NCBI RefSeq assembly: GCF_000150275.1
Contig: NW_002060968.1
Location: forward strand, 229,797-293,796
Length of the DNA: 64,000 nt
Direction of reading: 5' to 3'
Source: Trichoplax adhaerens
Taxonomy: Eukaryota > Animalia > Placozoa
Positions 17,154 through 58,255 of the stretch are shown in pieces (position 1 is the stretch's first letter; the number at the start of each line of letters is the position of its first letter). The notes beneath the pieces are model-generated. The model saw only the letters and a program-made list of their open reading frames with translations. It searched no databases and was not told where the DNA came from. The translations under genes were made by a program, and so were the position numbers.

Positions 17154-19924
<2,771 letters not shown>

Positions 19925-20134: not shown

Positions 20135-21160
20135 TCCCCCTATCAGGCTCTAACCCGTCCCGTCTCCCGTCCGTTAGACTACAGCATATCGTAGAATTAA
20201 TTAATTAATTAAAAGAGATTTTGAGCAGGCCATTTGAACATAATATTAAACATTTCATTGTGAACAACGCTGGTATATCGTAGGGGTCAAAAAGATTATG
20301 GGGAGACTTACCTCTATCAGGCTCTTCCCTTCCCGTCTCCCGTCCCGTAGACTGCAGTATATCGTAGAGGTAGAAAAGATTTTGGGGAGATTTACCTCTA
20401 TCAATCGGATTCTACCCCGTCCCGTAGACTACAGTATATCGTAGAGGTAAAAAAGATTTTTGGCGAGACTTACCTCTATCAGGCTCTCCCCTTTCTCGTC
20501 TGCCGTCCCGTAGACTACTGTACAGTATATCGTAAAGGTAGAAAAGATTTTTGGCGAGACTTACCTCTATCAGGCTCTTCCCTTTCCCGTCTCCCGTCCC
20601 GTAGACTGTAGTATATCGTAGAGGTAGAAAAGATTTTGGGGAGATTTACCTCTATCAATCAGATTCTACCCCGTCCCGTAGACTACAGTATATCGTAGAG
20701 GTAGAAAAGATTTTGGGGAGATTTACCTCTATCAATCAGATTCTACCCCGTCCCGTAGACTGCAGTATATCGTAGAGGTAAAAAAGATTTTTGGCGAGAC
20801 TTACCTCTATCAGGCTCTCCCCTTTCTCGTCTGCCGTCCCGTAGACTACTGTACAGTATATCGTAGAGGTAGAAAAGATTTTTGGCGAGACTTACCTCTA
20901 TCAGGCTCTTCCCTTTCCCGTCTCCCGTCCCGTAGACTGCAGTATATCGTAGAGGTAGAATCGATTTTGGAGAGACTTACCTCTATCAGGCTCTACCCCG
21001 TCCCGTAGACTACAGTATATCGTAGAGGTAAAATAGATTTTTGGCGAGACTTACCTCTATCAGGCTCTCCCCTTTCCCGTAGACTGCAGTATATCGTAGA
21101 GGTAGAATCGATTTTGGAGAGACTTACCTCTATCAGGCTCTACAGTACATCGTAGAGGTA
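20135..21160. repeat. GC-richer minisatellite: ~11-12 units of 73-91 bp, each bounded by the inverted pair TACCTCTA...TAGAGGTA
   Basis: TACCTCTATCA occurs at about 20309, 20393, 20471, 20562, 20647, 20723, 20802, 20893, 20978, 21052 and 21125. Each is followed by CCCGTAGACT(A/G)(C/T)AGTATATCGTA(G/A)AGGTA (last unit truncated) and a GATTTT(T)GG linker. Confidence 0.93.
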
Positions 21161-23074: not shown

Positions 23075-25825
<2,751 letters not shown>

Positions 25826-34413: not shown

Positions 34414-37400
34414 TCATGTTTTGGTAGAGCTAATCGCTAAAGCAATATCATTCCGACCTATTCGTCTCAAAGCTGTCTTCAGTCCATCAACATTAACATT
34501 TGGGCAATTTTTATTATACCAGATATCGAGAAATTTCATTACTTGATCGAAAACTCTACTTTCTTGAGCTTTGATTGTATCAACATCGATAAATGGGCCT
34601 AATATAGCAGCCAGTTTTGTCCAATCGATGCCAATTCTATCTGCAATTTCGAAAAAGCAATTCCTTGGATCTATAGAGTTACGGCAATATTGCAAATAAA
34701 TTAAGATGAAAAATGCTTAAACGAGAAATATTGCTAAATAGTACTTGTAATTAATATAAATAATGATTTGCCAATGTAAGAACTTTGCTATATATGTAGA
34801 ATTTAAAATATAAGATATAATAAGTTTGCATTGCATGCATATAGAGTACAAGAAATGGCTGGAAATATAGAAATACAATCAAATAAAGCAGATATAGATC
34901 AGCCGGCTAATTTTGCACCGAATATTATATCTACGCTGATACATTACGAGATCAAGCAATCATTAAACTGTATCTTTGGGATATAGCTTTGTTTTTATCT
35001 ATAGTAAAATATTTATACAAGTATAAATACTATATGTATTTTTATACTTAGTTCAGCTGCTTCTACAACAAATATTACATATTCCTTTCTTGTATTTAGT
35101 TGATAAAATATTGAATACATCATAGCAAGATGTTTATTTGATAAGTGTTACACTCACCATGTCTACTTGCCACTTTTTTCTTTTTACCGAAATTCCGATC
35201 ACGTATTGATTCTGATTTATGCGATCCTTTACGTTTACCAAAGCGATTGATATCTGATGTTTCTGCAAAATAGTTAGAGACTACTTCCGTCATCTTGTCA
35301 GCTAAGATAATAATCATTATTTTGAGAGATTACGCAGTTAATTTGAAGAGTAAATGCCGTAATCGATACTGTTAGAAAATAGATACTATTAACAAGATCG
35401 CGAATTCATCACTAAAGCAAGTAAATGTTATACCTATTGGAACATGGTATAATTTACTTTTATTTACTTTATTGCTAATTTACTTGACAAATACACTGTT
35501 TAAATTGAGATGCATTTTAACTTCTTCATTAAGTAATATCTAGTCTATATCTTTACCCACCGTATGTATTTGTTAATCTTTCCTTTCTAAGAAGCATCCA
35601 GTCACGTGTAGGCTTCGATTTAAAAAACTTCTCACATAAAACACAACGAATAATATCTACACTATCCGCGAAATAACTATCCACTATTTCTGTCATCTTA
35701 CTACATTCATTACATCTAACATAAAATCTACTTTGTGCTGATTTAAACTTTGGCATTCTTTCATTAATTGTCTCGTTTAGTTTATCTCTAATTATTATAT
35801 GTGGTTGTATCTTACTAATCCAACTACCGATATTATTCTCAATCCGAGACGCAATTTCTTTCGGATATTTCTGATAGCAATAGAGTAAGCTAATACGAGA
35901 TTCTTCTTTCTTAACAACAATCTGACATTGATAATCAGGTATGTAGTATTTAGCACATCGATAATAAACTTTTACTCTTGAGTTATTCCACACTTTTAAA
36001 CAAGCCGATAAAAGGCAATAAAATATACCGTCAGGAATATACGGTATAACTTTTTCGTCGTATCCAATGTATAGCCAATCTGATACACGATAATCTGTTA
36101 GATCTAACGTACCAACAGATGAATTAAGTAGATAAGGTATAAAATATTGCTGGTGACATTCTTTGTTATCAAGACTATCATGTTGATCCTCAATTTTACA
36201 GATAATATTATAACTATCCATTAATTGTAACACGAAATCTTTCTCTTTCTTTTTCAATTCGAAATCTACTACAATATTATCAATGTACGCTTCAGATATT
36301 TTTCCAGTCTGATAAGCTTGATTATAAGATTCTCTTACATTAGTGGCCTTATATTCGCGTTTATCGAGTTTAATAATCGATCGAAATATATTGAGTAGCC
36401 AATCGAGATTAGTTACAATCATTTCTTCTACGCCTTTTTTACGACAATATACAATATCGCCTATATCATGTAAGTATAATAACATACTACGCAATTTCTC
36501 ATCGTTTTCATATAACTCGCAATCTATAGCTAACTGCTTTACTTCTTCCAATGTCATAATATTATGAATTCTATTAATAATACGATTAAACTGTGTTGTT
36601 GATGCGGCTTGTCTGCTTATGTCATTAACTGATGTATGCAATATAGATGCCATAATATACCATCGAATCGGAATCGATTTTTTCATAAAAGGTAAACTAG
36701 ACACGATTCGCTTTATTAATTCATGTAACTGTAACGTAGTCTGTCGACGTTGCTCGATAGCCGCTGAAGATTTATCATCGGGATCGCAATGAAATATGAT
36801 GTCTGAAAAGCATATATTAGATTTATAGATAGGCATTGTTACAATAATAGAATTCTCAAACGCCTTAAATCTACGTTGACGCTCTTGACAATCTTGTATT
36901 TGATCGCCATGAGATGCTACTAAGATGACAACTGGTAAAGAATATTGTTGCAATTTACCATCAATTTCTACTTGGACAGTCTCATCGCCATCATGGCTAC
37001 CAATAATCGATGTAAGCCATTCTTGCATAGCATATCGATAAGTCATATTAGTTGGGTTTCCTTCTCTATCAATAACAAAGTCATCGAAATCACGAGTAAT
37101 ATTAAAAACTAAAATATAGATACTATTTCCAGATAGAAACGGACGATGCGTAACATGATAGACAGCTTGACCTCCGAAATCGACTAATTTACCATATTGA
37201 TTATCGTCATCTACTATTTCGCCTTTCATATCGATTATAGATCGCATAAAATCTTCGTACATTAAGATTTTGTGGATTTTTTGTGTTATTGAGACAGTAG
37301 ATACAAGGGTATCGATAGCCATAGGTCGATTATCGCTAATTACCGACTTTATTTTATCAGTGCTAATAAATGTGTCTGTTTCTATCGTCTGTATTTGACG

Positions 37401-40400
37401 ATCTACTTTACTAACTTGGATATCTGGGTTGATATTAGGTACAATATTCAGTTTTGTCTTGAATTTTTGTATAGCTGCTAACACTTTCCTATACAATACT
37501 ATCTGGAAGTGATAAATCTTCTTGTCTAAGATATTATATACAATAAGATTAACATATCTGCCGGTGTCGTCGATAATCTCAGTTTGGCTTACGCTAATAA
37601 TTATTCCTTGATTTGTAAATACGTTCATAATAGTCGTTTTACCCACACTTTCAGGACCGGCAAAGATAATTTTAGTAAAATCATTACGACATTGTCCATC
37701 TTGCAGCGCTTCATTATAAGCTTTAATGTATTCTTTATCATTGATAGCTAAATTAATATTAATTGATCAAATTATTAACCACAATAGGAATAGTTGTTAA
37801 TATACAGGATCAATATCTATCAACGACTAGGTTATGAGCGTAAATTAATTAAATTAAACTTCGTTTACGTAGTAAATAATAGTTTTTAAAAATAAATCTA
37901 TTCAAAGAAAATGGAAATTTAGCGATTTACAGTATTAATGAAATCAAATATTCAAGTTTGATCGCTGTATCATTAAGTAAACTATAGTTGCTATCAAGGT
38001 TGACAGTATTTTATGATAGATGAGAAGTAGAACAGCTCGTTAGTAATAAAAGTAGATAAAGATAATGCAGTATTTTCTTACCATCTGTATATGTGGAATT
38101 TTTACTTTTTAAATCCGTATTTGCGACTTTGAGGCTACCCTCTATTCATCAATTAATTATATATTAGTGAAGTCACATAAGTGATAGCTCGCAATTCAAA
38201 TTCTTGAGTAAGTCGTAGAGTTCAGCATTTACCTTGTAGTATTTTCATGGCATAACTCGATAATAATGGATTCGACTGAGCTTGTAGTAACATAGCGTTA
38301 AGATTCTCTATTATTTTATTCTGTTTTTGATTACAGAGACTGGCTATTAATATTATCAAATGGTCTTGCGATAAATTTCTCTCTAGCCAAAATCGTAACA
38401 TATTCGTAGCTAAAACCGAACTATGGCTTGCATAACGACATTGTTGCTCAAGATATTGGATATCATCATTAGAAATGCCCAAATGGATTGCCAAGTTTAT
38501 CCACTTATCTCCAATACCGTTTGCAATAGTAGAATAACATACCTCTATAGCGTAAAATACAAGAATATTTGGAATGGCTATTACAGCTATATTAAATAGT
38601 TAAAGATTATGTGTTTTGTACATTGTAATCAATTACTGTTCATTATCACACTATTAGTCTTAACAAACAGTTAGTGTTAATCGTTGTCGTTAGATATTTG
38701 ATTTTAGTACAAAAAATTTGCACGGGTGTAAACTCTAGTATTAATGTGTATATTTATAATAATTATTTAATGTCCCTTGATCCATTTTACTACCAATTAC
38801 TAACCATTGAACTTTTCTATTGCGGCTTTTTCTTCATCGATATACTTATTGGTCGAATTATCTTCAATTTCTATATCATTTTGGTCAAGTCCTACTGTAT
38901 AACATAATTGTAGCCTAAAATTATTTATTTGAATACATATCGGTAATTGTTTAGGATTATGAAATGTTAATCCTTGTATGGTTAAATTACCTTTACCATT
39001 TCAAACATTTTAAATGATACCGTTGTTGATATGTTGAAAATAATAGTACATTATTTCTTTATTATAACTTACTGACATATTAATTTACCAAAAGAATACT
39101 GATTAAAATATAATTTTAGATGTCTACTATATAACATACTTTCTGTTTATGGCATTAGATTGCATTAGTACAGGCTCTTTTTAGTCTTATAGCTTAATAA
39201 GAATGATCGACTAAACAGAGTTAAATCGCTATGCAGTGTAACGTTACATCGATATCTAATAAATAAACTGCTGCAACCTTGATCACTACTTTGCATTGAG
39301 TGTTGATCTTGATGTTCCTCGACTAGAAATAAAGAACAGAGTTAAGATTCTTATCAAAATTAGAGCAAACAGGTTATCAGTCCTGCTTGTAGGCAGAATT
39401 TTACCATCTAGTGCTACTTTCATGCTAATTTCGTTTAAAAAAATAAGTATTGTTACTTAGATAGCAGGTAAAATTTGCGTAAGTTATTTTCTTGTCAGAA
39501 ACGATCTACGATTACGAAAATTTGTTGTATTTAAATGATGTGATGTATAAAGTACAGTAGTAATTTGTACTAAAACTAGGACAGAAAATTGTAGTAAAGA
39601 TATTCTTCTTGATTTTACCAATGTTATCTTGTTTTGTTGTTAATTAATCATTATTTTATATATGCAAGAATATTCATTCAGTTTATATGAATACCGATTT
39701 CTAGGGTGTATTACTTTCTTAGAGTTTGTCATTTGAAAGAAAACTCTTTTATTGTGCTGAGTAGGTGATGGACTTTTAGCTCATTACTTCTCTTTTATGG
39801 GATATTCTGATGATAAACCCTTCAACGTTGAACTTGTTGTAATGTCGTCATGTCATAACACTAAACTTACGTACTATTTGAAATAAAATATAATGTCCAA
39901 TGGCAAAAATGCTTCATCGACTAATGTATGCTTGATTTAATATCGCTTAAATAAGTTATTAAAATTTTCTAGTTGGGTCAGTAATGTTGATGTCTAATTC
40001 TGTTTACTAATAATTGGAAATACAAGTTTTAGTTTTGAACTACACATGAGAAAATTCATAAATAGTAATTGGACTGTACCAATCTGTTCATAAATTGTCC
40101 TTCAACACGATTAATATTTTGGGCAGAAGAAACATTAGGAAAATCATGAACTAATTTGCAAAATTCAAGTTGATTTAGCTTATAAATTAAGGCTGTAAAG
40201 GAGTCAAAGACTTGTTGTATGGAAGTATTACGATATAGAATATCATTCCTAATTGGGCTAAATGAATTATATAATATAGAACTGCTGTCTATTAAAATTG
40301 AATGAATGAAGGATGGCTCTCTTTTCAATCCAAATGCTATGCTTTAAAATCATTACTGTTTATTATGAGAACGTAAACTGTTTATGTTACACTCATTAAT

Positions 40401-43400
40401 CATTAATTATAATATAATTGGAGTAGAACTAGGTATGGAGAGAAATATGAAGTTAATTGCTATCGATGACATTCATGCTACTACCGTATTCTAGCGACAG
40501 TAGTTGTTGATGGAAAGAAAGAACAAAAACATGAGTGTGGTATATTAGTGAGTTTGAATTTTCAGATCCGATTAAGGTTCAATTATTCGGTATGTTCCTT
40601 TTAACTTTAAAATGAGTGAAGTGGTCCAAGTAGATGCCGTATCTTAATAAAATTATTTCATAATTTTCATAATAAAGCAAGAATCAATAACCAGAAAATT
40701 CTATCGTCTCTCAGATTATAGCTAACTTGCCAATCAAAGTAATGAGTATAGCATTAGCCTTAACGATTAGTTTACTCAAACAAGCTATGTTTTATGTTAT
40801 TATTATGAAATGAGATTTTCGTTCGTTGTATCGATACAGTTTCTATATTCTAAGGTAACTATAACTTTAACTTATTCTGTTTGACTATAGTAGCACAGGA
40901 ATAAAATTTATAGTATGCACGTTAGTAGAAGAATTTATAGATGAAATAGTTGCCTGAATGCATTTCTTACAAGTTATCATTTGTTGTGCATTGTTTATCG
41001 GCAGTTATCTTATTTGCAAGAATGTTATCGTATTCGTTAGTATTTGTAATATGCCGTTAGCAAACCGTTAGCTTTGTTCAACTATATAACGGTACAGTTA
41101 TAGCTATAAAAGTTTAGTTCAATACTCTAGCTTTACTCGACTCTTGTAGAAGATTTCTAGCAAATCTTCCTTGTTACAAAGTAGAAGAGTTTCGGAAAAG
41201 TAACGGTTATGCTAACATTTTAATGAAATTGTTGATGTAAATTAGGTATTTATTGGAACGTAAAAGGTGAAAATATATTGGATGAAAAATTGTTCGAGTA
41301 GTGCTGAAATCAAGAAATTACCTGGTGATCGTGTAGAACGATGGATGACTGTTGGATTGATTGTAAGTTGCTGATGAAGAATATTGGCTATTTTTGATGC
41401 GACAATCTCATCCCCTTTTTCTTCCAATAACAGTAAATTATTACATTTATCAATTTCTTTCGTGGAATAGAGGATTTGAGGGTGATTTTCTTCATAGAGA
41501 TTGCGTAGACTATCGATGGATTTTCGATAGTATAAGATTGCTTGGAGATAATTAGACTGTCGGCGACAGACTGCGGCTAGTTTTTGATAACATTGCGCAG
41601 TCTGAGGATGATTCTCGCCTAATGTTACTAAATAAACTTGCAATGCCTTGTTATATAGAGATAGAGCATCATCGAGTTTTCTTTGCTTACAATAGGTAAA
41701 TCCAATATTAATATACGTTGAAGCAATATTTGGATGATTTTCGCCAAATTCTGCTAGATAAATCTTTAATGATTTGTTGTACATTAATAGAGCGTCTTCA
41801 CACTTGCCTTTTACCATATAGATAGCTCCAATATTGTTGTAGGTTGCAGCAATGCTTGGATGATTATCACCAAGTTGTGCTAGTTCAATTTGCAATGCAT
41901 TGTTAAGCATTAATAGAGCGTCATTATGCTTTTTTTGATGATCATAGACAGCTGCAATGTTGTTATATGTAGTAGCAATAGTCGGATGATTCTCACCAAG
42001 TTGTTGTAGTTGAATCTTAAGTGATTTGTTATGCATTAATAGAGCGTCATCATAATTTTTTTGGCTATCATAAACCAATCCAATTTTGTTATACGTTGAA
42101 GCAACTTTAGGATGATTATCACCTAATTGTGCTAGTTCGATCTTGAGCGATTTGTTATACAGTGATAGAGCATCCTCATATTTGCCTTGATTATAATAAA
42201 CAAGTCCCATGTTACCGTAGATGAAAGCAAGACTCGGATGATTTTCACCCTGTTTTGGTAGTTTAATTTTCAGTGATTCTTTCAATATAGATAGAGCGTC
42301 ATCGTACTTACTTTGCTTATTGTAGACTAGTGCAATGTTGTTATATGTTACAGCAACATTGAGATGATTTTCACCAAGCTGTGCTAGTTCTATCTTCAGT
42401 GATTTGTTATGCATTAATAAAGCATCGTTGTACTTGCCTTGTTCGTAATACACTTGTCCAATATTGCTATATGTAATGGCAATTTTGGGATGATTTTCAC
42501 CAAATTGGACTATTTCAATGTTTAATGATTTGTTATACATTAATACAGCGTCATTATATTTGCCCTGATGGTTGTAGATATTCGCAATTTTCTTATAGGT
42601 TGTAGCAACATAACGATGATTTTCACCAAGTTGTATTAATGTAATCTTGAGTGATTTGTTTAATATTGCTAGAGCGTCATTATACTTGCCTTGATTCGTA
42701 TAAACTTGTCCAATCTTGTCATATGCTTTAGCAATATTTGGATGATTCTCACCAAAATGCTTTAGTCGAATCCCGAGCGATGTGTTATACATTGCGAGAG
42801 CGTTATCGTACTTGCCTTGATCAATATAGACATCTCCAATGTTGCAATAGGTTATAGCAGTGTGCGGATGGTTGTCATCAAGCTGAACTATTTGAATTTT
42901 TAATGCTTTATGATGCATTGATAAAGCGTCCTCATACTTGCCTTGATTACTATAAACAAGTCCAATACTGCTATACATTACGGCAGTATTTGGATGTCTG
43001 TCACCAAATTTTGCTATTTGAATCTTCAATGATTTGTTATACATTGATAGTGCTGCATCATACTTGCCTTGATGATTATAAACTGCTCCAATGTTGCTAT
43101 ATGTTGTAGCAATAGCTGGATTATTGTCACCCAGCTGTGCTCGATCAATCTCCAATGATTTGTTATACATTAATAGAGCGTCATCATATTTGTCTTGCCT
43201 ACTATAGACTTGTGCAATGTTGTAGTATGCTAAAGCCATTTTTGGATGATGATCACCAAGTTGTTCTAATCGAATCTTCATTGATTTTTTATACATTGAT
43301 AGAGCCTCATCATACTTACTTTGTTCATAATAGATATCTCCAATGGAGTTATACGAGTAAGCGACATTGATATCTTGACTCCCTAAACAATTTAATTTCA

Positions 43401-43785
43401 TTTCAAGTGACTTATTAAATTCGGTTAAAGCTCCTTCGAAATCACCTTGCAATCGTTTAATGAAGCCCTGATGATCTAAACACTTTGAAATTTTCTCTTC
43501 ATTTTGTAGTTGCTTGGCTATTTTCTCTGCTTTCCTGCTCCATTCATCGATTTTTATTAATTCATGCAGATGTTCATAACATTTAGCTATATTAAGATAA
43601 ATATCACATTCAAGATGACGAAGACTATGATCGTTACTCTCGGATATCAATTGAATTTCGGTTGCAGCTTCCATGAAATAAGATAGCGCTTGTTTATAAT
43701 TGCCTTCTTTTCGACATTTCACACCCTTTTGGTTTATGGATTTGGCTTCGTTCAGGACATTCACACTAGTCGACGTACTCGCCAT
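34414..43785 (-). CDS. Roco gene A: TPR array (3 cap + 15 x 42-aa repeats) - death domain - Roc GTPase - COR - basic linker - death domain, ~1852 aa
   Basis: Exons 43785-41322, 39322-39278, 38894-38805, 38544-38233, 38141-38082, 37747-35561, 35301-35158 and 34670-34414 are all GT-AG and give one open frame of 5559 nt. P-loop KIIFAGPESVGKTT, G3 LVDFGGQ, G4 VILVASHGD; COR motifs PIRW, LLYLHDIGDIVY, WL. Death-domain signatures IGDKWINLAIHLGIS..I..L...ML.FW and IGIDWTKLAAILG...FLDIW...LKTALRRIGRND. Confidence 0.85.
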
Positions 43786-45199
43786 ATTTCAGTTTATAGC
43801 AGGACCGAAAGCATTTACTCTGATAAAATAGACAATAACACTCTACCAGAAACAAATTTTAATTGTAATAGCAGTACGAAAGATCAGTACAATCGCTTGT
43901 TTAAAGTTATTCAACTGTCAATATACCGTATATCGACATCAACGTAATTACCGCAATAAAGTCTAGGTAGCATTTTATTCTAGAGTTTGTATATATAGTA
44001 TTTTACATACATATAAAGATAAATGGAATTACACTACAACTTGACAACGAAATAGCCATCAATCTCTGAATTCTGTATCCTTCAATTAATCAGTAATTTT
44101 TATGATATGAAAATTACCTTCTGTAGTAATTGCAATAAGAGAAATAGAAAATAAAATTTTCCTTTACTATAGTAATTTAAATTACAAATACTGTATGATG
44201 TTATTTTCTAAGCGGGGATAATGGTGCTTTTGGTGAGATCTTTGTAAAGATTGTATATTTACTGCGGTATATCATCAAAGAAAGACCAAGAATAATTAAG
44301 ACTGTTGGATAAATATTATATAGTCTTTGTTGTACAGTAATCGTTATTGTGGAAAATGGATGCAAGATTATAAAAGTGAGGGCGACGTAATAGAGTCAGA
44401 TTGCTATAATACTGTTGACTATTCACATTCTCAGTTAATATCAAAAATCACTCAACCGTCTTAGTAAGAAAGGGATACTTTATTGTAGTTTATAATGGCC
44501 AAACTCCCTCCCAGAAAAATTCCCGGCTTTTATACCCTCGATAGCAGATTATACCATAGAGGGCCTGCAGAATCTACAGTAAGTCTTCCTAATGCTTGCA
44601 AGCCTTGATCATGCAGGTTCTTCCTTATAGTCCTAATATAGCTATTATATGTCATAGATACTGCACAAATCGTAGTAGCACCTTCTAAATGTTATTACAA
44701 GCAGTGGTATAATTCTGCAAGTCTAACCATAAAGGTTCTCCCTTATGTTCCTAAAATAGCTATTCTGTTTGCTGTGTTACAGTTGCTGCACTAATCTTAG
44801 CATTTTTAAAATGTGAGTTAAACTGACAGTTCAAGCAGAGGTATAAGTCTGTTTATACAGGCTGGATGTACTAGTATATGTAAAATTCGGTAGTTATGGT
44901 TGAGCAACATGTAAGCTATCGTAAGATAATGAAAGAATATCAGAACTGCTAAGATTATAGAAATCAATTCGACACATACTATAACAGTCGATGAAATGGA
45001 AAATGATTGATTTTAAGATATTGCGAAAGTTGTTGGCTTTATAGATAACTAAGTATGACAAAGTACATTAACATCTAGTGCCTGGCAATTGTAAGTAATA
45101 GTTAAGAATGAATCACAAATTGCTCATGTTCTAAAATACGCTAGTAATGCAATACAATCTCAATACACTATACTTGTTTATTAAAGTAAACCACATAAT

Positions 45200-46935
45200 T
45201 TTCATGCATCTGTTGGAATCATACCATTCTACGAATCTTTTCTTATCTAATCATAAATGTTGCCACATCCGTCTACATGTTGCATTTATTTACCTTTAGT
45301 ACTCGCTTTGCAATATATTTCACAGACCCTAAATGTAATACTAACTTAGTTGAATCAATTTTAGGGTATTTTTGTACTGATCAAAGTATTGAGAGATTTA
45401 CCTACCCTGAGAAACATCATCAAACTTGTTGATGGCCTTAAAAAAACGTTATGGAACAATTGACAGTGTTGTAATTTAGATTAAGATTGTTTACTCTATT
45501 TATTAGTTAGTATCGATCAACGATTACAGACTCTCTAGTATTAGAAGATTCCATGATTACAACCTTTATGAAAGAATCGAAGAAATTGTCTGTTAAATTG
45601 AAAATTCCGAGAGACCTCCTATCTGATCATTTAACCACATCATAAAAATTAAATTATTATGATAGCCCATTAACTCATGATACGTATGTACTGTAAGTGT
45701 AAGTCAGAAATTAAGATAATGATGGAAGTAAATTAATATTTTATTATTTTATGTATTAATAGTACCGTAGTGGTTTTACTAATATTAAAAATGTTGATTA
45801 GGGAAAAGAAATCGTACAAATGTGCTGATTAATATTCCATCAAGAAATAACTTCATCGAAGAAATGTCTTCAGAATTGATTTTGATAATTACCGTATTTG
45901 ACATTTCTCTATAGATGACACTCTTTTATTTTATAAGTACCAGGATGATGCACGATGCTTTACTAATTTGAAACTTCTCGTCATTTGTCAAAGATGCGTG
46001 CTCGTTTCAAGATTGCTGTGCTCTAGCTTAATTTTTATGACTGTCAATCATCGATGTTAATTATCCTTACATAGCTGCCCAAATGTTATATTAACTGGTT
46101 TTCTATCCTGGTCGATTACAACAATATCAATGGTATGAATGATATTAAATAGTGTAATAACATATAAATAATATTTCCAAATAGGAATAGACAATGTGAT
46201 CCATGATATAGTAGATGCTATTGACTTCCAGTGTTAGTTCAGTTTTCATAGCAGCTATCATCAACACTTATAATCTTGCTGTTTAGACTCTGTCTGATTT
46301 TGCATAAAACTTTCATAAATTACGATTGTATGATTCAATTTCGGTGTTCAATCTTCAGGTGGATCGATATTATTACTAATTAGGGTCTTTCAGTAGAAGA
46401 ATTTCTAAAAATATGTAAGATCTCGCTTACTTCACTTCACTTCAATTTGATCAGTTTGCTAGAATTTGCAAAACACCATCTTATCTCACAACAAGAATAG
46501 CCGAAGTTGTTTACGTCCTTTTCCAGTTCTTTTAACTTTCAGAACTAATAACCTGATTACCACCAAAGCAACGTCAGTTTCTTCGAACAGACAGATGGTT
46601 TCGTCCTCATTTTTGTTTAGTAAATGGCCTACCTACGCTAATTTGATTTTTAAACTATTCTGTCGCTTTAAACGCGTTTCGTGTTATCATATTTGGAAGT
46701 CAATTTTTGCCACGTTCAAAATATTGAAGTGATCAGATTTACCAACTTCTTAATATCTTTCACAAAGTATAATGTCAGTTTCACCAGAGGCGTGCTTAAT
46801 CTCTATACATGCACTCATAATAGATGTTGTATCAGCTATTTCATGATTAGCAACAACGATTTGGTGAAATCATTGCAGCATTTGACTAGCAGTAATAATT
46901 CATTTTAAGCTAATAAATATTCTTTATCATTGATA
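45200..46935 (-). pseudogene. Decayed Roc-COR exon (third paralog)
   Basis: The minus strand from 46935 reads INDKEYLLA*NELLLLVKCCNDFTK/IVVANHEIADTTSIM, versus intact INDKEYIKAYNEALQDGQCRNDFTKIIFAGPESVGKTTIM. About 46150-46035 reads LFNIIHTIDIVVIDQDRKPVNITF/AAM*G*LTSMIDSH, versus VFNITRDFDDFVIDREGNPTNMTYRYAMQEWLTSIIGSH. It has stops, frameshifts and a destroyed P-loop. The left boundary is approximate. Confidence 0.8.
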
Positions 46936-47496
46936 ATTAATGTTACAAAACACAGGTAAAGTTATTAAACAGGAACACTATAACGAATATCATGATATTA
47001 TCTAGACAAACATTTTATACGTATTTACTAGTAGCTTGCAGTACTCCGAGTATGTAGCAATTCTTAAGTAATTTTTTGGTTAGTAATGTTAGTACAAAAT
47101 TAATTATTACATATTGAGCAGTAAATATTGATAATTACTTATGCAGGATTAGTAACCTCTACATAATATTTAGACTGTATTAAGAAATTAGTATCTGTAT
47201 TATTAACTATTCTATCAAACCATGTATTCCGGTATGATGTTAATATCATATAGATGTTGTGCAATCACATATTACACTCAATGGTTGATATAGAAATTAC
47301 TAATGAAAAATTATGTTACTAAATTACTGTTGATGGTATTAAAATAGGGTATAAAAGTCGCGAAAATGTGCAAATGACTTTTAAGTTTTTGATTAACCAC
47401 AGACACAATTAATAATAGGTACTGTAATCAATTTTTGTTAAAAAATATAACAATTGTAGTGAAAAATGCTTTATAATATAGTAATATGTACCAATT

Positions 47497-50400
47497 CTAA
47501 GTAGAACTAATAGCCAAAACAATATCATTTCGACCTATTCGTTCTAAAGCTGCCTTAAGTTGATCAACATTAACATTTGGAAAATTTCTGTCATACCAAG
47601 TATCCAAAAATTTCATAGCTCGGTCGAAAATTCTATTATCTTGTTCTTTGATAACATCAACATCAATAGATCGATCTAATCTTGCAGCTAATCTCGTCCA
47701 ATCGAGACCGATTCTATTTGCAATTTGGAAGAAGTGATACTTGGAGTCTGTAGCATTACATTAACATTGTAAATAAATTACAATGAAAATAATGAAGCAA
47801 GGATATAGTTAAGTGAAACTTGTAATGATTTTAAAGTTATGATTTGTCAATACAAGAGCTTTGTTATATTTATCGATTACGAACTAGTAAATTTAGAATT
47901 GAACTGATGTACATTAAACACAAAAAATAGCCGGAAGCATGTGCAGACTGGTTGGCTAATGTTGCTACTGTTTTTGTTAAAGATGAAAATATTAAATAAC
48001 TTGTACTTTCTAATTTATTTCGATAGTTAAATTCATCTTAATGAAGTTCTAACTTTGTTTTTGTCTACTTTAAGATATAAACACGGGCACATCTATATCA
48101 GCTAGACGTTTATTACATATATCTTACACTCACCTTTTCTACTTGCCATTCTTTTCTTTTTATCAGCATTTCGATCATGTGTCAATTCTGATTTACACGA
48201 TCCTTTACGTTTTCCAAAGCGATTGATATCTGGTCTTTCTGCGAAATAATTATAGGACAGTTTTGTTACCTTGTCAGCTACGACAATTATTATTATTTAA
48301 AGAGATTACGCAGTTAATTTGAAGAGTAAATGCCGTAATCGATACTGTTAGAAAATAGATACTATTAACAAGATCGCGAATTCATCACTAAAGCAAGTAA
48401 ATGTTATACTTATTGGAACATGGTATAATTTACTTTTATTTACTTTATTGCTAATTTACTTGACAAATACACTATTTAAATTGAGATGCATTTTAGCTTC
48501 TTCATCAAGTAATATCTAGTCTATATCTTTACCCACCGTATGTATTTGTTAATCTTTCCTTTCTAAGAAGCATCCAGTCACGTGTAGGCTTCGATTTAAA
48601 AAATTTCTCACATAAAACACAACGAATAATATCTACACTATCCGCGAAATAACTATCCACTATTTCTGTCATCTTACTACATTCATTACATCTAACATAA
48701 AATCTGCTTTGTGCTGATTTAAACTTTGGCATTCTTTCATTAATTGTCTCGTTTAGTTTATCTCTAATTATTATATGTGGTTGTATCTTACTAATCCAAC
48801 TACCGATATTATTCTCAATCCTAGACGCAATTTCTTTCGGATATTTCTGATAGCAATAGAGTAAGCTAATACGAGATTCTTCTTTCTTAACAACAATCTG
48901 ACATTGATAATCAGGTATGTAGTATTTAGCACATCGATAATAAACTTTTACTCTTGAGTTATTCCACACTTTTAAACAAGCCGATAAAAGGCAATAAAAT
49001 ATACCGTCAGGAATATACGGTATAACTTTTTCGTCGTATCCAATGTATAGCCAATCTGATACACGATAATCTGTTAGATCTAACGTACCAACAGATGAAT
49101 TAAGTAGATAAGGTATAAAATATTGCTGGTGACATTCTTTGTTATCAAGACTATCATGTTGATCCTCAATTTTACAGATAATATTATAACTATCCATTAA
49201 TTGTAACACGAAATCTTTCTCTTTCTTTTTCAATTCGAAATCTACTACAATATTATCAATGTACGCTTCAGATATTTTTCCAGTCTGATAAGCTTGATTA
49301 TAAGATTCTCTTACATTAGCACTCTTATATTCGCGTTTATCGAGTTTAATAATCGATCGAAATATATTGAGTAGCCAATCGAGATTAGTTACAATCATTT
49401 CTTCTACGCCTTTTTTACGACAATATACAATATCGCCTATATCATGTAAGTATAATAACATACTACGCAATTTCTCATCGTTTTCATATAACTCGCAATC
49501 TATAGCTAACTGCTTTACTTCTTCCAATGTCATAATATTATGAATTCTATTAATAATACGATTAAACTGTGTTGTTGATGCGGCTTGTCTGCTTATGTCA
49601 TTAACTGATGTATGCAATATAGATGCCATAATATACCATCGAATCGGAATCGATTTTTTCATAAAAGGTAAACTAGACACGATTCGCTTTATTAATTCAT
49701 GTAACTGTAACGTAGTCTGTCGACGTTGCTCGATAGCCGCTGAAGATTTATCATCGGGATCGCAATGAAATATGATGTCTGAAAAGCATATATTAGATTT
49801 ATAGATAGGCATTGTTGCAATAATAGAATTCTCAAACGTCTTAAATCTACGTTGACGCTCTTGACAATCTTGTATTCGATCGCCATGAGATGCTACTAAG
49901 ATGACAACTGGTAAAGAATATTGTTGCAATTTACCATCAATTTCTACTTGGACAGTCTCATCGCCATCATGGCTACCAATAATCGATGTAAGCCATTCTT
50001 GCATAGCATATCGATAAGTCATATTAGTTGGGTTTCCTTCTCTATCAATAACAAAGTCATCGAAATCACGAGTAATATTAAAAACTAAAATATAGATACT
50101 ATTTCCAGATAGAAATGGACGATGCGTAACATGATAGACAGCTTGACCTCCGAAATCGACTAATTTACCATATTGATTATCGTCATCTACTATTTCGCCT
50201 TTCATATCGATTATAGATCGCATAAAATCTTCGTACATTAAGATTTTGTGGATTTTTTGTGTTATTGAGACAGTAGATACAAGAGTATCGATAGCCATAG
50301 GTCGATTATCGCTAATTACCGACTTTATTTTATCAGTGCTAATAAATGTGTCTGTTTCTATCGTCTGTATTTGACGATCTACTTTACTAACTTGGATATC

Positions 50401-53400
50401 TGGGTTGATATTAGGTACAATATTCAGTTTTGTCTTGAATTTTTGTATAGCTGCTAACACTTTCCTATACAATACTATCTGAAAGTGATAAATCTTCTTG
50501 TCTAAGATATTGTATACAATAAGATTAACATATCTTCCGGTGTCGTCGATAATCTCAGTTTGGCTTACGCTAATAATTATTCCTTGATTTGTAAATACGT
50601 TCATAATAGTCGTTTTACCCACACTTTCAGGACCGGCAAAGATAATTTTAGTAAAATCATTACGACATTGTCCATCTTGCAGCGCTTCATTATAAGCTTT
50701 AATGTATTCTTTATCATTGATAGCTAAATTAATATTAATTGATCAAATTATTAACCACGATAGAAATATTTCCCAAAGTATAGTATTATTATGACCTATA
50801 AACCGTAAATAGTAATAAAAGTAGAGAGAGAGAGTGTAGTTAAAATTTCCTCACCTTCAGTATATGTGGAATTTTCACTTTTCAAATCCGTGTTTTCAAT
50901 CTTGAGACTACCATCTATTTAATAATTAATTAGTGAATGTAAATAAAATCTTGCGACTCACATCATTCAATAAATTAATTAATGCAGCATTTACCCTGTA
51001 AAATTTTCATCACATAACTCGATAATAATGGATTCGATTGGGCTTTCAGTAAGATATCGTTAAGATTCTTTGTTATTTTGTATAGTTTTAGATTAAAGAG
51101 GCTGGTTATTAATATTACCAAGTGGTTTTGGGATAGATTTTTCTTAAGCCAAAAATGCAGTATTTTGATGGCTAAAACCGAACTAGGACTTGGATGATGA
51201 CATTGCTCGATATATTGGATATCATCATTAGAAATGCCTAAATCGATTGATAAGTTTATCCACTTGTCTCCAATTTCGTTCGCAATAGTCGAATAACATT
51301 TCTCTATAGTGGAAGTTACAACATAATCCAAAATGGGTATTACGGTAATGTTAAATAGTATATGTGATATAAATATATTTATTTACGGATTGAGTTTGTG
51401 TAGATCAGTAGTCGATTACTACATATTATGAATGCTATTAATTTTCACAAATGTTTACTGTTAATTATTATCATTAGACTTTGGTATTAATTTACAGTAT
51501 TATAAATGTTACTGATAATGCCTTTCGATCAATTTTACTATTAATTACTAACCGTTAAAAATTTCTATTGCCTCTTTTTCTTTGTTGATATCCACATTAG
51601 TCGAGTTATCTCCAGCTTTCTTGTCATTTTGTTCAAATTCTACTGTAATACATATTTGAAATTTTAAGCAAATTACTCCAACATATATATATTTCAGACT
51701 ATGAAATACGAACATATGCATGGTTGTTTTACTTGTGTATCATTTCGAACATATAAATGATAGCTGACGACTTGAAAATAGTAATATTGCTGTTATATCA
51801 TTACTATAACTCACTACTATACATTTATCAAGATGGTATTGACTTGAATTTTATTTCAAGATCATCCATTTTTACTGGCAAGAATTATTTTAAGTCTTAT
51901 ATTTTGGTATGAATGATTTAATAAACAGAGCTACATCATTATATTTTACAACGTTACATCGATATTCAATATATTGTATAGACTACCATAACCTTGATTA
52001 TTACTTTGCCTCGAGTGCTGTCCTTGGTATTTCAAATCTAGAGATAAAGATAAAGTATTATATCATAGTTCGAGCAACATATTAGAATAGTCTGACAGTT
52101 CTATTTCCAGACAAGATTTCTACTGATATTGTGCTACATTAACGTTCATTTTTTTGAATAACAAGTATTGTTAGCCAACTAGCTGGTAATATTTGATGTA
52201 AGTTATTTTCTGTGTCGGGTATGGTCTAAATTACTTGGATTTGTTTCGTTTAAGTGATATGGTGTATAACTTAATAATAAAAAATACATTGGAGAAGAAA
52301 ATTGTATTATAGATATTTTCCTAGTCTTTGCCCATGCTATTCTTATCTTGAATAATAATTATTTAAAACATGAACAGTTACAGTTACAGATGGAATCATA
52401 CTGACTCATTTTGTGTAAATGTCGATTTCTGCAACGTGATATTGCTTTAGTGTTTGTAGTATTGGAATGAAATCTCTTTATTATATTGAGTAAAGGGTGG
52501 AGTTCTAACAAAATTATTTCTTCTGTATGCAACAGTCTAAAAATAGTAGAATTTATTGCAATGTAATGATATTATGATACAAAAAATTGTATGGCTACTT
52601 GGAGTTAAACATAACGTTCATTGGCGAAAATATTCCACTAACTTATGTGTGTTGGATTTATTGCTGGTTAAATGAGCTATTTTAATTTATTAGTTGATCA
52701 GTAATATTGATGTCTAGTTACAAAAGAATAATTAGAAGATACAAGTTCTAATTTTAAATTACCAATAAGAAAATGAACGTACATTATTTGTACTAGACGA
52801 AGTTTTATTGGAAATATTTTCCCCCTTTATACTATTGACTTATAGGTCAGAAAGAAATCTACAGTATGCAAGAACACAAACCAATTTGCAATATTAAAAT
52901 TGTTTGGCTCGTAAATTGTTGATGTAGGGCGGCATTAACTTGTTGTATGGAAATATTACAAAGTATGTAGCATAATTCCTAATTGTATTATGAAAAGTAT
53001 AACAGGAATTGTTCTGTATAAAAATTGAATAAATGAATGATAGTTCTCTTGTTAACCCAAATATTATACTTGCCTGGATTAATCTATTTAAAAAAATTGA
53101 TTTCTTGTGTTGTACTCATGAGTCGCTAATTTAGCATGAGATTATTTGTGACCTATTCTAATAACTATAGTAACGGCTGCTGACAGAAGGCAAGTATATG
53201 AACGTAGCCTCTTAATTAGTTGGAATTATCGATTCTACTTATTGCTTAATCATTTGTCGTATTTCTATTTACTTCCGTATAGGTAGCTTTGGTCCAAGAC
53301 CATATCGCGTTTTGATAAACTGATTTCAATACTTTTATAATGCTGCAACAATCAGTAATAAAATATTTCTATCGTTACTCTGTTTTTACTATTAATTAGC

Positions 53401-55960
53401 CAATCGATTTAATGTGATATAAATAAAGCATTAAGTTTTATCGACTTGTCTACTCGAAGAAACTATGCTTAAAAATTATACTAGTACTTTAAATAAAATT
53501 ATTGAAATGGATTGATTATTCGTTTAATTTTGATGCATTAACAAGATTGAGCAAATAAGTTGGCTAGAACGATTATTCTACTAGTGAATTGAATTTTAAT
53601 GATGCGTAAACTTACTATGGCGCTGTGTGTTATCTTTTATTCCCGTTTGACTTTCTTGGCTATTTTCTTTATCTGGTGAAAATAGAAGGTGAATATGTAT
53701 TAAATAGATGATAAATGGCTAGATTAGAGCTTAAAATCTAGTAATCACCTGGTGATGTTGTGGAATCATGAACTACTGTTTGATTGACTACATGTTCTTG
53801 TAAGGGCTGATGAATAACTTTGGCTGTTTCTGATGTAACAGTTCCTTTCTCATTTTCGTGTAGTTGATTATTACATTCAGCAATTTGTTTGGCAACATGG
53901 AGGATTTGAGGGTGATTTTCTTCATAGACGTTGTGTAGGGAATCGATGGACTTTCGATAGAGTGAAATTGCTTGATGATAATTAGACTGTCGATGATCAA
54001 CTTGAGCTAGTTTTTCATAGCATTTGGCTGTATGAAGATGATTCTCACCTAGTGTTGCCAAAAGGACTTGCAATGACTTGCTATACATAAATCGAGCATC
54101 ATCGTATTTGCTTTGTTCAATATAGAGACTTCCAATGTTGATATATATTAAAGCAGTAGTTGGGTGATTGTTACCAAATTTTGTTAGATAAATCTTTAGT
54201 GATTTTTTTAACATTGATAGAGCATCTGTATGCTTATGTTGACTCTCATAGATTGCTGCAATGTTGTTATATGTTACTGCAATATTTGGATGATTGTCAT
54301 TAGATTGCGTTAATTGAATCTTCAGTGATTTGTTATATAGTAATAGAGCATCTTCAGACTTTCCTTGGCGATAATAAGCAGTGGCAATGTTGGCATATGT
54401 TGAAGCAATGCTTGGATGATTGTCGCCAAGTCGTGCTAATTCAATCTTGAGTGTTTTGTTATACATTAATAGAGCATCATTATATTTGCCTTGGTATTGA
54501 TAGACAGTTCCAATGCTGCCATACGTATTAGCAAGATCGGGACGATTACTATCATGTTGTGCTAGTTGAATCTTGAGTGATTTGTTCAGCATTGATAGAG
54601 CATCATTATACTTGCCTTGACCACTATAAATATCTCCAATTCTTTTATATGTAAAAGCAATACGAGGATGATTGCCACCAAGTTGTGATAATTGAATCTT
54701 GAGGGATTTGTTCAACATTGATAGAGCATCATCGTATTTGCTTTGCTTAGCATAGACACTTGCGATATTGCTACATGATATAGCAATGTCGGGATGATCA
54801 TCACCAAGTTGTGCTAGTTTAATCTTGAGTGATTTGTTAAACATTAATAAAGCGTCATTATGCTTGCCTTGTTTATAATAGATACTTGCAATATTGGAAT
54901 AGATTGCAGCATTTGAATGATTGCCATTAGGGTGTGCTACTGCAATCTGTAGTGATTTGTCGAACATTAAAAGAGCATCATCGAATTTGCCTTGCTGATA
55001 GTAGACACTTCCAATATTGCAATAGGTATTAGCAATTTCTGGATGATTGTCATCGCCTTGCATTAATTTAATCTTCAATGATTTCTTGTACATTGACAGG
55101 GCATCATTATGTTTGCCTTGATGCAGATAAACAACTCCAATGCTATTATACCTATTAGCAACATCAGGATGATTTTCACCAAGTTGTTCTATTTTAATCT
55201 TCAGCGATGCGTAATACATTGATAGAGCGTTATTATACTTGCCTTGATGACTGTAAGTATCGCCAAAGTTGCGGTATGTTAGAGCAAGACTTGGATGATT
55301 GTCACCAAGATGTACTAGTTGAATCTTTAGAGATTTATTAAGCATTGATAAAGCCTCATCGTGCTTGCTTTGAAGATTATAGGTTCTTGCAATGCTATCG
55401 TATGTTTGAGCAATATTTAGATGATCGTCACCAAATATTACTAATTGCATCTTTAACGATTTGTTAAACATTGATAGAGCCTCATCATGCTTTCTTTGAT
55501 CATTATAGACATCTCCAATTGCACGATAGGACTTACTTATAATGCTATGTTCATTTCCGAAGCATTTTAGTCTCATTTTAAGTGCTTTATTAATATCAAT
55601 CAAAGCTCCACTGTAATCGCCTTGTATCCGTTTAATAAGCCCCTGATTATTTAAACATGTTGAAATTTTCACTTCATCTTGTAGTTGCTTAGCTAATTCC
55701 TCTGCTTTTCTGTTCCATTTATCGGCTTTTACCAATTCATGTTGATGTAAATAACAATAAGTTATGTTGAGATAAATACTACATTCAAGTTGCTGATAAT
55801 CATTATCACTACTCTTGGATATCCATTGAATTTTAGTTACAGCTTCTATGAAATAGGATAGCGCTTGTTCATAGTTTTCTTCATCTCGAGATTTCTCACC
55901 ATTTTGATTCATGGATTTGATTTCGTCGAGGACAGTTGAATTAGTAGATAAACTAGTCAT
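47497..55960 (-). CDS. Roco gene B: TPR array (3 cap + 13 repeats) - death domain - Roc - COR - basic linker - death domain, ~1765 aa
   Basis: Exons 55960-53749, 52037-51993, 51642-51553, 51303-50995, 50914-50855, 50723-48537, 48277-48134 and 47747-47497 sit at splice positions homologous to gene A, with an open frame of 5298 nt. Terminal death domain DSKYHFFQIANRIGLDWTRLAARL...LKAALERIGRNDIVLAISST*. Confidence 0.85.
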
Positions 55961-56442
55961 ACTTCAGTCTATAGCAAGATTAAAAGCGTATAGCTTGATG
56001 AAATAGACAGCGATGCACTACTGAAGAGATTATACTTTTGATAGCTGCTCAAATGATAGAGTTCACATGCATTGCATCGCATGCAGGTTTAAAAGAAAAT
56101 AACATAACGTACTGTAATAAGAGAATAGGAATGAATGTTTTCTTTCACGATGGTCTCATTTGAACTACAAATAATGTTTAAATTTGTTATTATCCAAGTG
56201 GGGAATAATTATAACATTATTGGCGATTATGCATTCATCATATCATCAAGAATTACCAAGAATAATTAACGTTGTTGAAGAAATATTGTATATTCTCTGT
56301 TGTGCAGTAATCATTATCGGGGAAAATTGGTGCAAGACTATAGAAACGAGAGCGGCATAATTAAGTCAGATCGCTAAAATAAAGTAGAAAAAGTAGAAAG
56401 TGTGTAACGTTATACGGTTATTGAAAACAAGATAGGAATTAT

Positions 56443-56850
56443 TCGATAGAGTAAGATTGCTTGGTGATAATTAGACTGTCGGCGATAGACTGCGGCTAGT
56501 TTTTGATGACATTGCTTAATATAAGGATGATTCTCACCTAATATTGCTAAATAAACTTGCAATGCCTAGTATTAGATGGAAAGAGGATCATTGAATTTTC
56601 TGTGTCTGTAACAAGTTAATCCACTATTGACATACGTTCCAGCAATATTTGGATGATTGTTGCCAAATGCTGCTTGATAAATCTTGAATGATTTGTTATA
56701 CATTGATACAGTAGAGTGTCTTTACACTTGCCTTTTTTTCTGATAGATAGTTGCAATATTGTTGTATATTATAGCAATAATTGGATGGTTGTCACCAAGT
56801 TGCACTATTTCTAGCTGTAATGATTTGTTATGCATTGATAGATCGTCATC
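56443..56850 (-). pseudogene. Decayed TPR-array fragment (~3 repeats)
   Basis: Aligns by eye to the last repeats of gene A (~41525-41930), e.g. TTAGACTGTCGGCGA(C/T)AGACTGCGGCTAGTTTTTGAT, CAATATTTGGATGATT and ACACTTGCCTTTT. It has indels and stops and no start or flanking exons. Confidence 0.85.
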
Positions 56851-58255
56851 ACTTATGTAGCAATTTATTCTATCTTTAAACGTTCAATTCTTCTTTTTGA
56901 TATCATTCATCACTCCTTGTCTTATACCGAACATCAAATCCATCGGTTGCTTGAACATAAAGTACTTCTTAGAAATTCTGTAAAATGATGTAACATGTGC
57001 AGGCAAATTTGTTCAATACCAGCACATTATCATTGCTATAGAAGCAAGTCTAACAAGAGCAAAAGAGACAAACACAAATTCATAATTATAAATAGATTAT
57101 CTTATGTATGTTTTATTAACTAATTTGTTAATACACGGGCTTCTGTAAAACAGGTACACATTTAAAATTTTTATATTTAGCAACAAAATTTACTTCGTTA
57201 TCAAGTCAAGGCCAAACTCTTTATCATAGAGACATATGTAAACAATTGGTCGAGCTATCATAGAATAGATGTATTATTATATTTATACTCAATACGTACT
57301 ATGTAATAAAGAAAGTATGAATATTAGCCTGTTTACTTTTAAGCGTGGACAACCGTGCATAATCATTTTAAGAAATGAGCTTAACAACAGCAGGATGATA
57401 GCTTTCCATTCTGACTTGGGAAGTATTGGATAAAATAGACTAAGCTGAAAACATGGAATATAAATGATACAATATGAATGAACACTTTGTTGAAGACCAT
57501 CGTAGATATTGATACAGTAGTTAATATCATTACAGACACAAGGTTAATGATAAGGCATTGCTAATTAATTTATATAAAATTAAAAAGTTGACATTTATCA
57601 GAACTTTCCCTGACCGCTCAAGGTATTTCGCAGCAGTATTCGAAATAGAACCATAATGACTGCTATGAGCGTAAATAATGATACAATACTGCTAGTATTA
57701 TATTTACAGCATGATATGGTAGCAGACACAAAAAAATAGAGTGTTACTATAGCGTACTCAATGTCTATTCTGGTCAATAATTGTGCTGACGATAAGTTTA
57801 CAAATCGGTAAGCGGAGATTGCATGGAATACACAAAGACGTAATAGCATCTGCAGTCTCTTCCCGTACTGTCTATGCAATCGATTACAGAACCAGCTAAT
57901 TCTTTATATATAATTTTAAAACCAAAATAGTATCTTTTTTCCTATGACTTGCTACATCATTCCGTGCTGGGGTACAGTATTATATCACTCGATGATAATT
58001 TAGTAAAGATACACCGATAGCTAGCTATCTCGAATGTAGAATTTGATGCCGGAATACAATAAACAATTTTATGTACAATACAATTATTATTATTGTTATG
58101 AGTTGTAAGCTGCTGCTACATAATCTTACTGTAATAAATGATATCTACAGCATCAACTGTTGAAGACGACAATCAGAACATTTATTCTGATGTGAGAAAT
58201 TTAAGTTATCGTTATCTATTTACATTTTTAATGTATAATGTTATCATGATGGGTT

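Follow-up and report, generated by a model that had tools for sequence, protein, structure and literature searches.

How two long-diverged neighbouring genes came to carry one nearly identical domain exon is the question that this locus raises. The window, a stretch of 64,000 nucleotides of the Trichoplax adhaerens genome, contains two tandem Roco paralogs, A (34414–43785) and B (47497–55960), which lie on the minus strand in the same orientation about 13 kb apart. Both genes have the order TPR, Death domain, Roc-COR, Death domain, with one domain per exon. Comparison of A and B was carried out exon by exon; reading frames were open in both genes, splice sites matched the consensus, and every exon was in phase 1. 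A third paralog, C, served as the outgroup for the A/B distances, and outgroup paralogs were used to polarise differences. A and B were sisters relative to paralogs C and D, and these outgroups are therefore uninformative on the direction of any conversion between them.

The near-identical tract occupies 35325–37782 in gene A, with bounding mismatches at 35323/35324 and 37783, and 48301–50758 in gene B (both minus strand). Over its 2458 bp the two copies showed 19 mismatches and no indels at a constant offset of 12,976 bp (99.23% identity). At this offset, identity per 100 bp was 94–100% within the tract and 21–40%, the random level, outside it. Assuming the lowest divergence found in the flanks (17.5%), the binomial chance of so few mismatches (at most 19 among 2458 sites) was ~1e-171. 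The tract comprises the entire 2187-nt Roc-COR exon (E7) together with 236 nt of intron 7 downstream and 35 nt of intron 6 upstream; its intronic part is 271 nt, and both ends lie within introns. Intron 7 carried four of the mismatches, intron 6 none, and the exon 15 in 13 codons, eight of them synonymous and five changing an amino acid (Q282R, A295T, V302A, A467S, T468A). A 4-nt cluster of mismatches lay at 36344–36347 within the exon. The preliminary description, which had given a sharp-edged, gap-free tract of this length and offset with about 20 substitutions, five amino-acid changes, and ~235 and ~35 bp of intron, was exact; the counts were 19 mismatches, five replacements, and 236 and 35 nt of intron.

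Exon E7 lies at 35561–37747 in A (minus strand; 2187 nt with 728 full codons, phase 1 at either end) and at 48537–50723 in B (minus strand, 2187 nt, stop-free in the same frame). Its translation contained a G1 motif, GPESVGKT, at residue 30, a G3 motif, DFGGQ, at residue 189, and SHGD, a candidate G4, at residue 278, with ~150 residues between G1 and G3. Pfam COR-A scored 46 bits in both copies (cut-off 35.3), directly after the GTPase region. Pfam Roc scored 20.9 bits, under its cut-off of 27, and a match to an archaeal Roco structure (PDB 4wnr, E=4.6e-4) was limited to the switch II region. At least 40 copies of a Roc-COR exon were present in this genome, most of them single open exons of ~2.1 kb. 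According to Civiero et al. 2014 (cited in PMC11378527), the Trichoplax ROCO family numbers at least 17 genes, among whose domains are TPR, LRR, CARD and Death. A and B share with this family the architecture of TPR, Roc-COR and Death domain. The published accounts of the family consulted here cover domain diversity, whereas the feature described here is an exchange of sequence between members; no link between Trichoplax Roco genes and gene conversion was found among the papers searched. Homologues in Trichoplax sp. H2 carry the annotation ‘Nephrocystin-3’ or ‘Kinesin light chain’.

The rest of the two genes was clearly diverged, some 20–35% apart, with 71–83% nucleotide and 50–79% amino-acid identity in flanking exons. 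Introns outside the tract were 62–74% identical over aligned columns, with numerous indels, in agreement with the earlier remark that introns there were barely alignable and exons diverged. Downstream of E7 (all coordinates on the minus strand), the linker exon E8 (A 35158–35301, B 48134–48277) was 79% identical in nucleotides and 66% in amino acids, with a synonymous divergence (dS) of 0.37; the H2 annotation places its acceptor 39 nt further, at ~35262 rather than 35301. Exon E9, with the C-terminal Death domain (Pfam Death, E=5e-12) and the stop codon (A 34414–34670, B 47497–47747), was 77% and 67% identical, with a dS of 0.74. Upstream, exon E5 (A 38233–38544, B 50995–51303) encodes the first Death domain (Pfam Death) and was 82% and 73% identical, with a dS of 0.60. 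The short linker exons were E6 (60 nt; A 38082–38141, B 50855–50914; phase 1, AG/GT sites conserved; dS 0.89), E4 (90 nt; A 38805–38894, B 51553–51642; dS 0.74) and E3 (45 nt; A 39278–39322, B 51993–52037; dS 1.2 over 14 codons). Exon E1 provides the start codon and the TPR array, encoding 821 aa in A (41322–43785; Pfam TPR_12 E=2e-177; phase-1 donor at 41322) and 737 aa in B (53749–55960). Amino-acid identity here was 59%, and two of A's 42-aa repeats are missing from B. An A-only ORF of 95 aa at 40343–40059 was considered as an extra exon and excluded from the gene model, as it was frame-broken in B and had no Pfam match. No Rfam family reached its gathering score in a search for functional RNA across 33500–57500, which covers the tract and introns.

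The contrast between tract and flanks extended to sites on which protein-level selection does not act. dS was 0.021 in the Roc-COR exon versus 0.37–1.2 in the six other shared exons, and intron divergence (K) was 0.017 (236 nt) and 0 (35 nt) within the tract versus 0.32–0.52 outside; introns and synonymous sites were thus homogenised 25–30-fold relative to the flanks. The ratio of the A–B distance to the distance of A or B from paralog C was 0.66 for the first Death domain and 0.67 for the TPR N-terminus versus 0.022 for Roc-COR, and with paralog C as the yardstick, the A and B Roc-COR exons would be expected to be ~82% identical without conversion. Purifying selection alone was ruled out by the homogenised introns and silent sites, which bears out the earlier argument that such identity lies beyond protein-level selection. 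Per-exon dS had also been proposed as a check, with equal values in tract and flanks counting against conversion, and the values were not equal.

Non-allelic (interlocus) gene conversion between the tandem A and B paralogs is the explanation that we favour, with a probability of roughly 85%. Because both flanks are homologous and in register, the event was a homologous replacement and not an insertion. On the left, intron 7 of A (35302–35560, minus strand, 259 nt) lies in the tract from 35325 to 35560, and the remaining 23 sites (35302–35324), of which six differ, lie outside. The ~80% identity of the left flank at 35124–35324 reflects the small coding exon E8 located there rather than a gradual fading of the tract. 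On the right, intron 6 of A (37748–38081, minus strand, 334 nt) contributes only 37748–37782; the flank was alignable for at least 13 nt past the tract, after which a pre-existing indel followed. Intron 6 of B is 129 nt long, and ~207 nt of A (~37796–38002) had no counterpart there. A's longer intron aligned with paralog C, by which B probably carries a deletion.

These junctions also bear on non-homologous cassette replacement (exon shuffling), in which the phase-1 Roc-COR exon would have been copied illegitimately together with short intron stubs. The phase 1 of all A and B exons, and the placement of each domain on its own exon, would suit such a process. However, at both junctions the near-identity gave way to diverged but homologous sequence with the register unchanged, the offset of 12,976 was kept through E8 with no indel at the left junction, and the 2458 bp showed no target duplications, filler or length change. 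In-register junctions without filler are what homologous repair gives, and we consider exon shuffling very improbable.

Under gene conversion, one copy would have suffered a break within its Roc-COR exon or close to it, with repair most likely templated by the neighbouring paralog through synthesis-dependent strand annealing or heteroduplex repair. About 2.46 kb would thereby have been copied without reciprocal exchange, leaving copy number unchanged. The upstream tract end lies about 35 nt from the 207-bp intron length difference, which may have blocked further heteroduplex extension. The proposal of recent gene conversion between old paralogs thus held up, with neutral sites homogenised, flanks in register and both genes intact. 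Its ‘recent’ applies only in a relative sense: the dS ratio gives the event about 3% of the age of the duplication, and it appears to be older than the split between strains H1 and H2.

An assembly artefact, in which the H1 assembler put into one paralog reads that belonged to the other copy or to that copy's second allele, would produce a similar pattern. Near-identical repeats pose problems for assemblers, the H2 contig is interrupted at each of the two copies, and the tract divergence of 0.77% resembles the allelic heterozygosity of these genomes, which have an allelic SNP rate of ~1% (PMC6057997); part of the 19 differences may accordingly be allelic. Against this, the window contained no Ns, and the tract junctions were seamless and in register. 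The longest perfectly identical run between A and B in the tract of the H1 assembly was 498 bp. Assembly-wide, only two copies of the tract were found at 99% identity or more, and the next best reached 75%; no orphan exon of 76–98% identity was present in the 105.6-Mb assembly. The 75% copies each lay on a large scaffold in their own context, so there is no displaced ‘true’ exon.

The assembly of Trichoplax sp. H2 provided further evidence. Its contig NOWV01000496.1 corresponded to window positions 48856–37498 at 99.0% identity, with B's own downstream flank joined to the tract (48301–48856) and A's own flank likewise joined. Both contig ends lay within the tract, and the left junction of A (35325) and the right junction of B (50758) fell outside the contig. 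Eight of the 10 A/B diagnostic sites kept their copy assignment in this contig, and 112 H2-specific differences were spread along it. The second step of the H2 assembly was reference-guided, using AlignGraph with the H1 genome (PMC6057997), and the copy assignment of variants in H2 is therefore not fully independent. The mis-join named in the preliminary description as an alternative found no support in this second strain, in whose partly H1-guided assembly the tract is joined to each copy's own flank. Since the H2 contig has both flank–tract joins and eight of 10 variants, the tract is very probably real and, on this comparison of sequences, probably older than the H1/H2 split. An artefact is highly unlikely.

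The differences within the tract were polarised by outgroup states, and derived changes were present in both the A and the B copies. Transitions outnumbered transversions by 16:3. Both observations are as expected if the differences are new mutations that arose after conversion. The dN/dS within the tract was ~0.16.

The remaining question is whether the homogenisation was recurrent and kept by selection. Concerted evolution of this kind would maintain a shared GTPase and dimerisation core, for example for A–B heterodimers of the kind formed by paired receptors, as diversification went on in the TPR sensors and the Death domains. Dimerisation of Roco proteins has been assigned to COR (PMC11378527). 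Homologous repair between templates presumed to be ~18% diverged is expected to be inefficient, which makes a series of earlier conversions conceivable in place of one event, and conversion would be easier to explain if the exon had never diverged far. We compared five tandem Roco sets, A/B included, for Roc-COR homogenisation, and a homogenised block was found in two of them. The second was a tandem pair on scaffold C1375, in which a 1354-bp block at 98.3% identity covered the COR half of the exon and ~150 nt of intron and adjoined a flank at 66%; this block, however, runs into an assembly gap, where it stops. The tandem arrays C1392, C1381 and C1404 had no homogenised block, and their Roc-COR exons were 70–78% identical. 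There was no signature of GC-biased conversion, the GC3 of E7 (0.25–0.26) being no higher than that of other exons, and the eight of 10 differences shared with H2 imply no turnover since the H1/H2 split. The 271 nt of intron in the tract, and tract ends that are intronic, one of them near a 207-bp indel, also argue against an adaptive reading. Recurrent, selectively kept homogenisation is on this evidence unlikely. It is quite unlikely that the Roc-COR exon is a preferred, selectively retained target across tandem Trichoplax Roco pairs, allowing A–B heterodimers while TPR and Death domains diverge. A neutral account is enough, in that homologous repair finds its easiest substrate in the exon that is longest, most conserved and free of repeats, and heterodimer compatibility, which the preliminary description had raised as a possibility, is not needed to explain the tract.

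Interlocus conversion between tandem duplicates is well known from the human gamma-globin genes HBG1/HBG2, from RHD/RHCE, and from the red and green opsins. Like A and B, these pairs are older tandem paralogs with a patch of near-identity that includes introns and silent sites, has sharp non-coding edges and leaves copy number unchanged. A and B differ from them in the placozoan host, in the fairly long tract of 2.46 kb, and in its correspondence to exactly one domain exon of a multi-domain, receptor-like gene. The host reproduces mostly vegetatively, which makes a mitotic origin of the A/B conversion plausible. Clustered immune receptor genes, such as plant NLR clusters and the vertebrate MHC and KIR genes, also exchange sequence. 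The likeness lies in tandem receptor-like genes with a homogenised, conserved nucleotide-binding core and diversifying repeat sensors; unlike in those clusters, an immune role for A and B is conjecture, and only two of five tandem sets carry a block. If the reading of selective homogenisation were true, placozoans would have in such pairs a counterpart to the paired or networked receptors of immunity.

The tract is very probably real but an ordinary kind of event, bearing the classic mark of a gene part of which has been overwritten by its neighbour, and taken alone it reveals neither a new mechanism nor a new function. As a clean, well-bounded conversion at the scale of a domain, it documents homologous exchange between paralogs in a placozoan, a member of an animal lineage considered to be mainly asexual. 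The resulting proteins have a common Roc-COR core, five residues apart, combined with TPR arrays that are 59% identical and Death domains that are 73% and 67% identical. For trees of Roco genes this is a warning, as within a single gene the history of the Roc-COR exon can differ from that of the exons for TPR and Death domains. The locus is also a breakpoint for short-read assemblies, the H2 contig ending within both copies of the tract.

Genes A and B are tandem Roco paralogs lying in the same orientation on the minus strand, and their exons were traced through A/B alignments and conserved AG/GT splice sites. In gene A, these were E1 (TPR; 43785-41322), E3 (39322-39278), E4 (38894-38805), E5 (Death; 38544-38233), E6 (38141-38082), E7 (Roc-COR; 37747-35561), E8 (35301-35158), and E9 (Death; 34670-34414), all on the minus strand. 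The same exon set in gene B occupied 55960-47497 (minus strand), and all introns of both genes were phase 1. All searches and dS estimates were run on individual exons. Pfam matches above threshold were TPR_12, Death (twice), and COR-A, and the Pfam Roc score was under threshold. The G1, G3, and HxD-type G4 motifs were present in E7, and its switch II matched an archaeal Roco structure. Within this Roc domain (35562-37745, minus strand; residues 30-189), about 150 residues separate the P-loop GPESVGKT from DFGGQ, a spacing far above that of typical Roc domains. For T. adhaerens, PMC11378527 reports at least 17 ROCO genes, with domains that include TPR, CARD, and Death, and our own count of Roc-COR exon matches in the genome exceeded 40. 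The window, which corresponds to C1389:229797-293796 of the assembly, had 33% GC and contained no Ns.

The two genes share a 2458-bp tract (35325-37782 in A; 48301-50758 in B) in which 19 positions differed, with no indels and an offset that stayed at 12,976 bp throughout. At this offset, identity in 100-bp steps was 94-100% within the tract compared to 21-40% outside. BLASTN of one half of the locus against the other gave 97.6% identity over 35124-37795, and adjoining colinear blocks reached only 67-76%. Besides the entire 2187-nt Roc-COR exon, the tract took in 35 nt of upstream intron 6 and most of downstream intron 7 (236 of 259 nt). Mismatches fell in E7 (15) and intron 7 (4), and none in the intron 6 portion; those in E7, which include one 4-nt cluster, produced eight synonymous codons and five amino-acid changes. 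The preliminary description of the tract, with its ungapped offset, about 20 substitutions, five amino-acid changes, and intron stubs, was accurate in every number checked.

On three measures, sequence identity in the tract exceeds what constraint would produce. Nei-Gojobori dS between A and B was 0.021 for E7, compared to 1.21 (E3), 0.74 (E4), 0.60 (E5), 0.89 (E6), 0.37 (E8), and 0.74 (E9). Jukes-Cantor distances over aligned intron columns were 0.017 and 0 within the tract, compared to 0.32-0.52 for every other intron. As a yardstick, we used a third paralog, C, on another contig (C1414). The ratio of the A-B distance to the distance to C was 0.66 for the first Death domain and 0.67 for the TPR N-terminus, but 0.022 for Roc-COR, for which about 82% A/B identity would be expected without exchange. 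The earlier proposal that protein-level selection does not account for the identity was borne out by the E7 and intron values, and the dS comparison it had called for separated the tract from its flanks. GC3 of E7 was not elevated.

The tract edges were sharp. At the left, the last mismatches were at 35323/35324, beyond which the remaining 23 nt of intron 7 and E8 kept the tract offset at ~74-80% identity. At the right, the first mismatch was at 37783, followed by lower-identity homology for a few tens of bases and then ~207 nt in A without a counterpart in B. This length difference is probably a deletion in intron 6 of B, because paralog C can be aligned to the longer intron of A. The flanks are in register on both sides, which points to homologous replacement and not to insertion of a cassette. 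Together with the dS and intron distances, this upholds the suggested gene conversion between old paralogs, and we consider it very likely (probability about 0.85, from sequence comparison) that the ~2.46-kb tract is genuine, with sharp bounds, and arose by non-allelic gene conversion between tandem Roco paralogs of Trichoplax.

The possibility of an assembly artefact was addressed by searching the whole assembly of the T. adhaerens genome under study (H1; 105.6 Mb, 1414 contigs) with the tract. Only copies A and B matched at ≥99%; the next-best matches (75%) lay on large scaffolds, each in its own gene context, and no displaced diverged Roc-COR exon was found across the assembly. The longest perfectly identical run between the copies was 498 bp. 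A representative-protein search retrieved TrispH2_011809 from a second strain, Trichoplax sp. H2, encoded on an 11.7-kb contig (NOWV01000496.1) that matched window 48856-37498 at 99.0% (112 differences). This contig starts inside the B tract, runs through B E8 and E9, intergenic DNA, and A E1-E6, and ends inside the A tract, so that in the second strain, too, the private flank of either copy runs into tract sequence. Contig breaks at both tract copies are what would be expected where short reads cannot span a repeat. The H1 copy assignment was kept at 8/10 A/B diagnostic sites covered by the contig, the exceptions being 35730 (48706 in the B copy, read on the B part of H2) and 37536. The H2 assembly began as a de novo MaSuRCA build that was afterwards extended by AlignGraph using the H1 genome (PMC6057997), and is therefore only partly independent. 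Three H1/H2 differences (37771, 37779, and 37783) clustered in a 13-bp stretch that coincides exactly with the right edge of the tract, and at 37783, copy A of H2 has the state of copy B in H1.

By the dS ratio, the event would have an age roughly 3% that of the duplication. Shared diagnostic sites suggest that it predates the H1/H2 split, with the H2 assembly being partly H1-guided. The A-B divergence in the tract (0.77%) was of the same order as the H1-H2 divergence at the locus (~1%) and as allelic heterozygosity (~1%; PMC6057997). By outgroup states, both copies carried derived changes, the 4-nt cluster being derived in A, and transitions outnumbered transversions 16 to 3; derived changes in both copies and a transition excess are what post-conversion mutation predicts. 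A and B are sister copies with respect to every other paralog, which therefore do not indicate a donor.

Four further tandem Roco arrays were compared. The C1375 pair (C1375:184001-214000) shared a 1354-bp block at 98.3% identity (joined coordinates 6784-8133 vs. 21899-23252) that took in the COR half of the exon and ~150 nt of downstream intron; its adjoining flank was 66% identical, and it ended at a 50-N assembly gap in the second copy. No such block was present in the C1392, C1381, and C1404 arrays, whose exons were 70-78% identical. Putative exchange in the Roc-COR exon thus recurs in the Roco family without occurring in every array compared. Most simply, this is because no other conserved, non-repetitive stretch of these genes is as long. 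Paralogs C (C1414:12749171-12753569) and D (C1383:438697-442532), on different scaffolds, shared two stretches, one of 2826 bp at 97.8% that comprises the Roc-COR exon with its stubs and one of 1015 bp at 99.2%; homology did not extend past them, including below the exon, and D lacked a 560-bp piece that holds the first Death exon in C. Their similarity may stem from partial duplication in the recent past or from a haplotype scaffold. Gene conversion of this type is a classical phenomenon. Our search of the available literature found no report of the A/B tract or its recurrence in the Trichoplax Roco family, and both this instance and the hint of recurrence appear undescribed.

Several minor features were observed. 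The E8 peptide (35158-35301, minus strand) resembled the last ~46 residues of the Roc-COR exon (35562-35699, minus strand; 35% identity), a likeness suggestive of a small internal duplication; in the H2 annotation, E8 begins 39 nt further on (35262 in A, 48238 in B). The first intron of A held a 95-aa open frame (40059-40343, minus strand) with a possible phase-1 acceptor and no Pfam match. The homologous stretch of B has a broken frame, and the A frame represents either an exon that has decayed or a fortuitous ORF. Just upstream of the gene B start, a degenerate TPR exon remnant (56413-56883, minus strand) contained internal stops and showed 60% amino-acid identity to the final part of the TPR array of A; it may be what is left of a third tandem copy. 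Elsewhere, a direct duplication of ~5.9 kb (17348-19801 vs. 23270-25696; 92-99% identical) lay where GC content was higher (37-45%), and an array of short tandem repeats followed each copy (20273-21143, 73-91-nt units; 26563-27468, ~61-149-nt units). An intronless 380-aa ORF at 14609-15751 (plus strand) encoded a rhodopsin-family GPCR (Pfam 7tm_1, E=3e-46).
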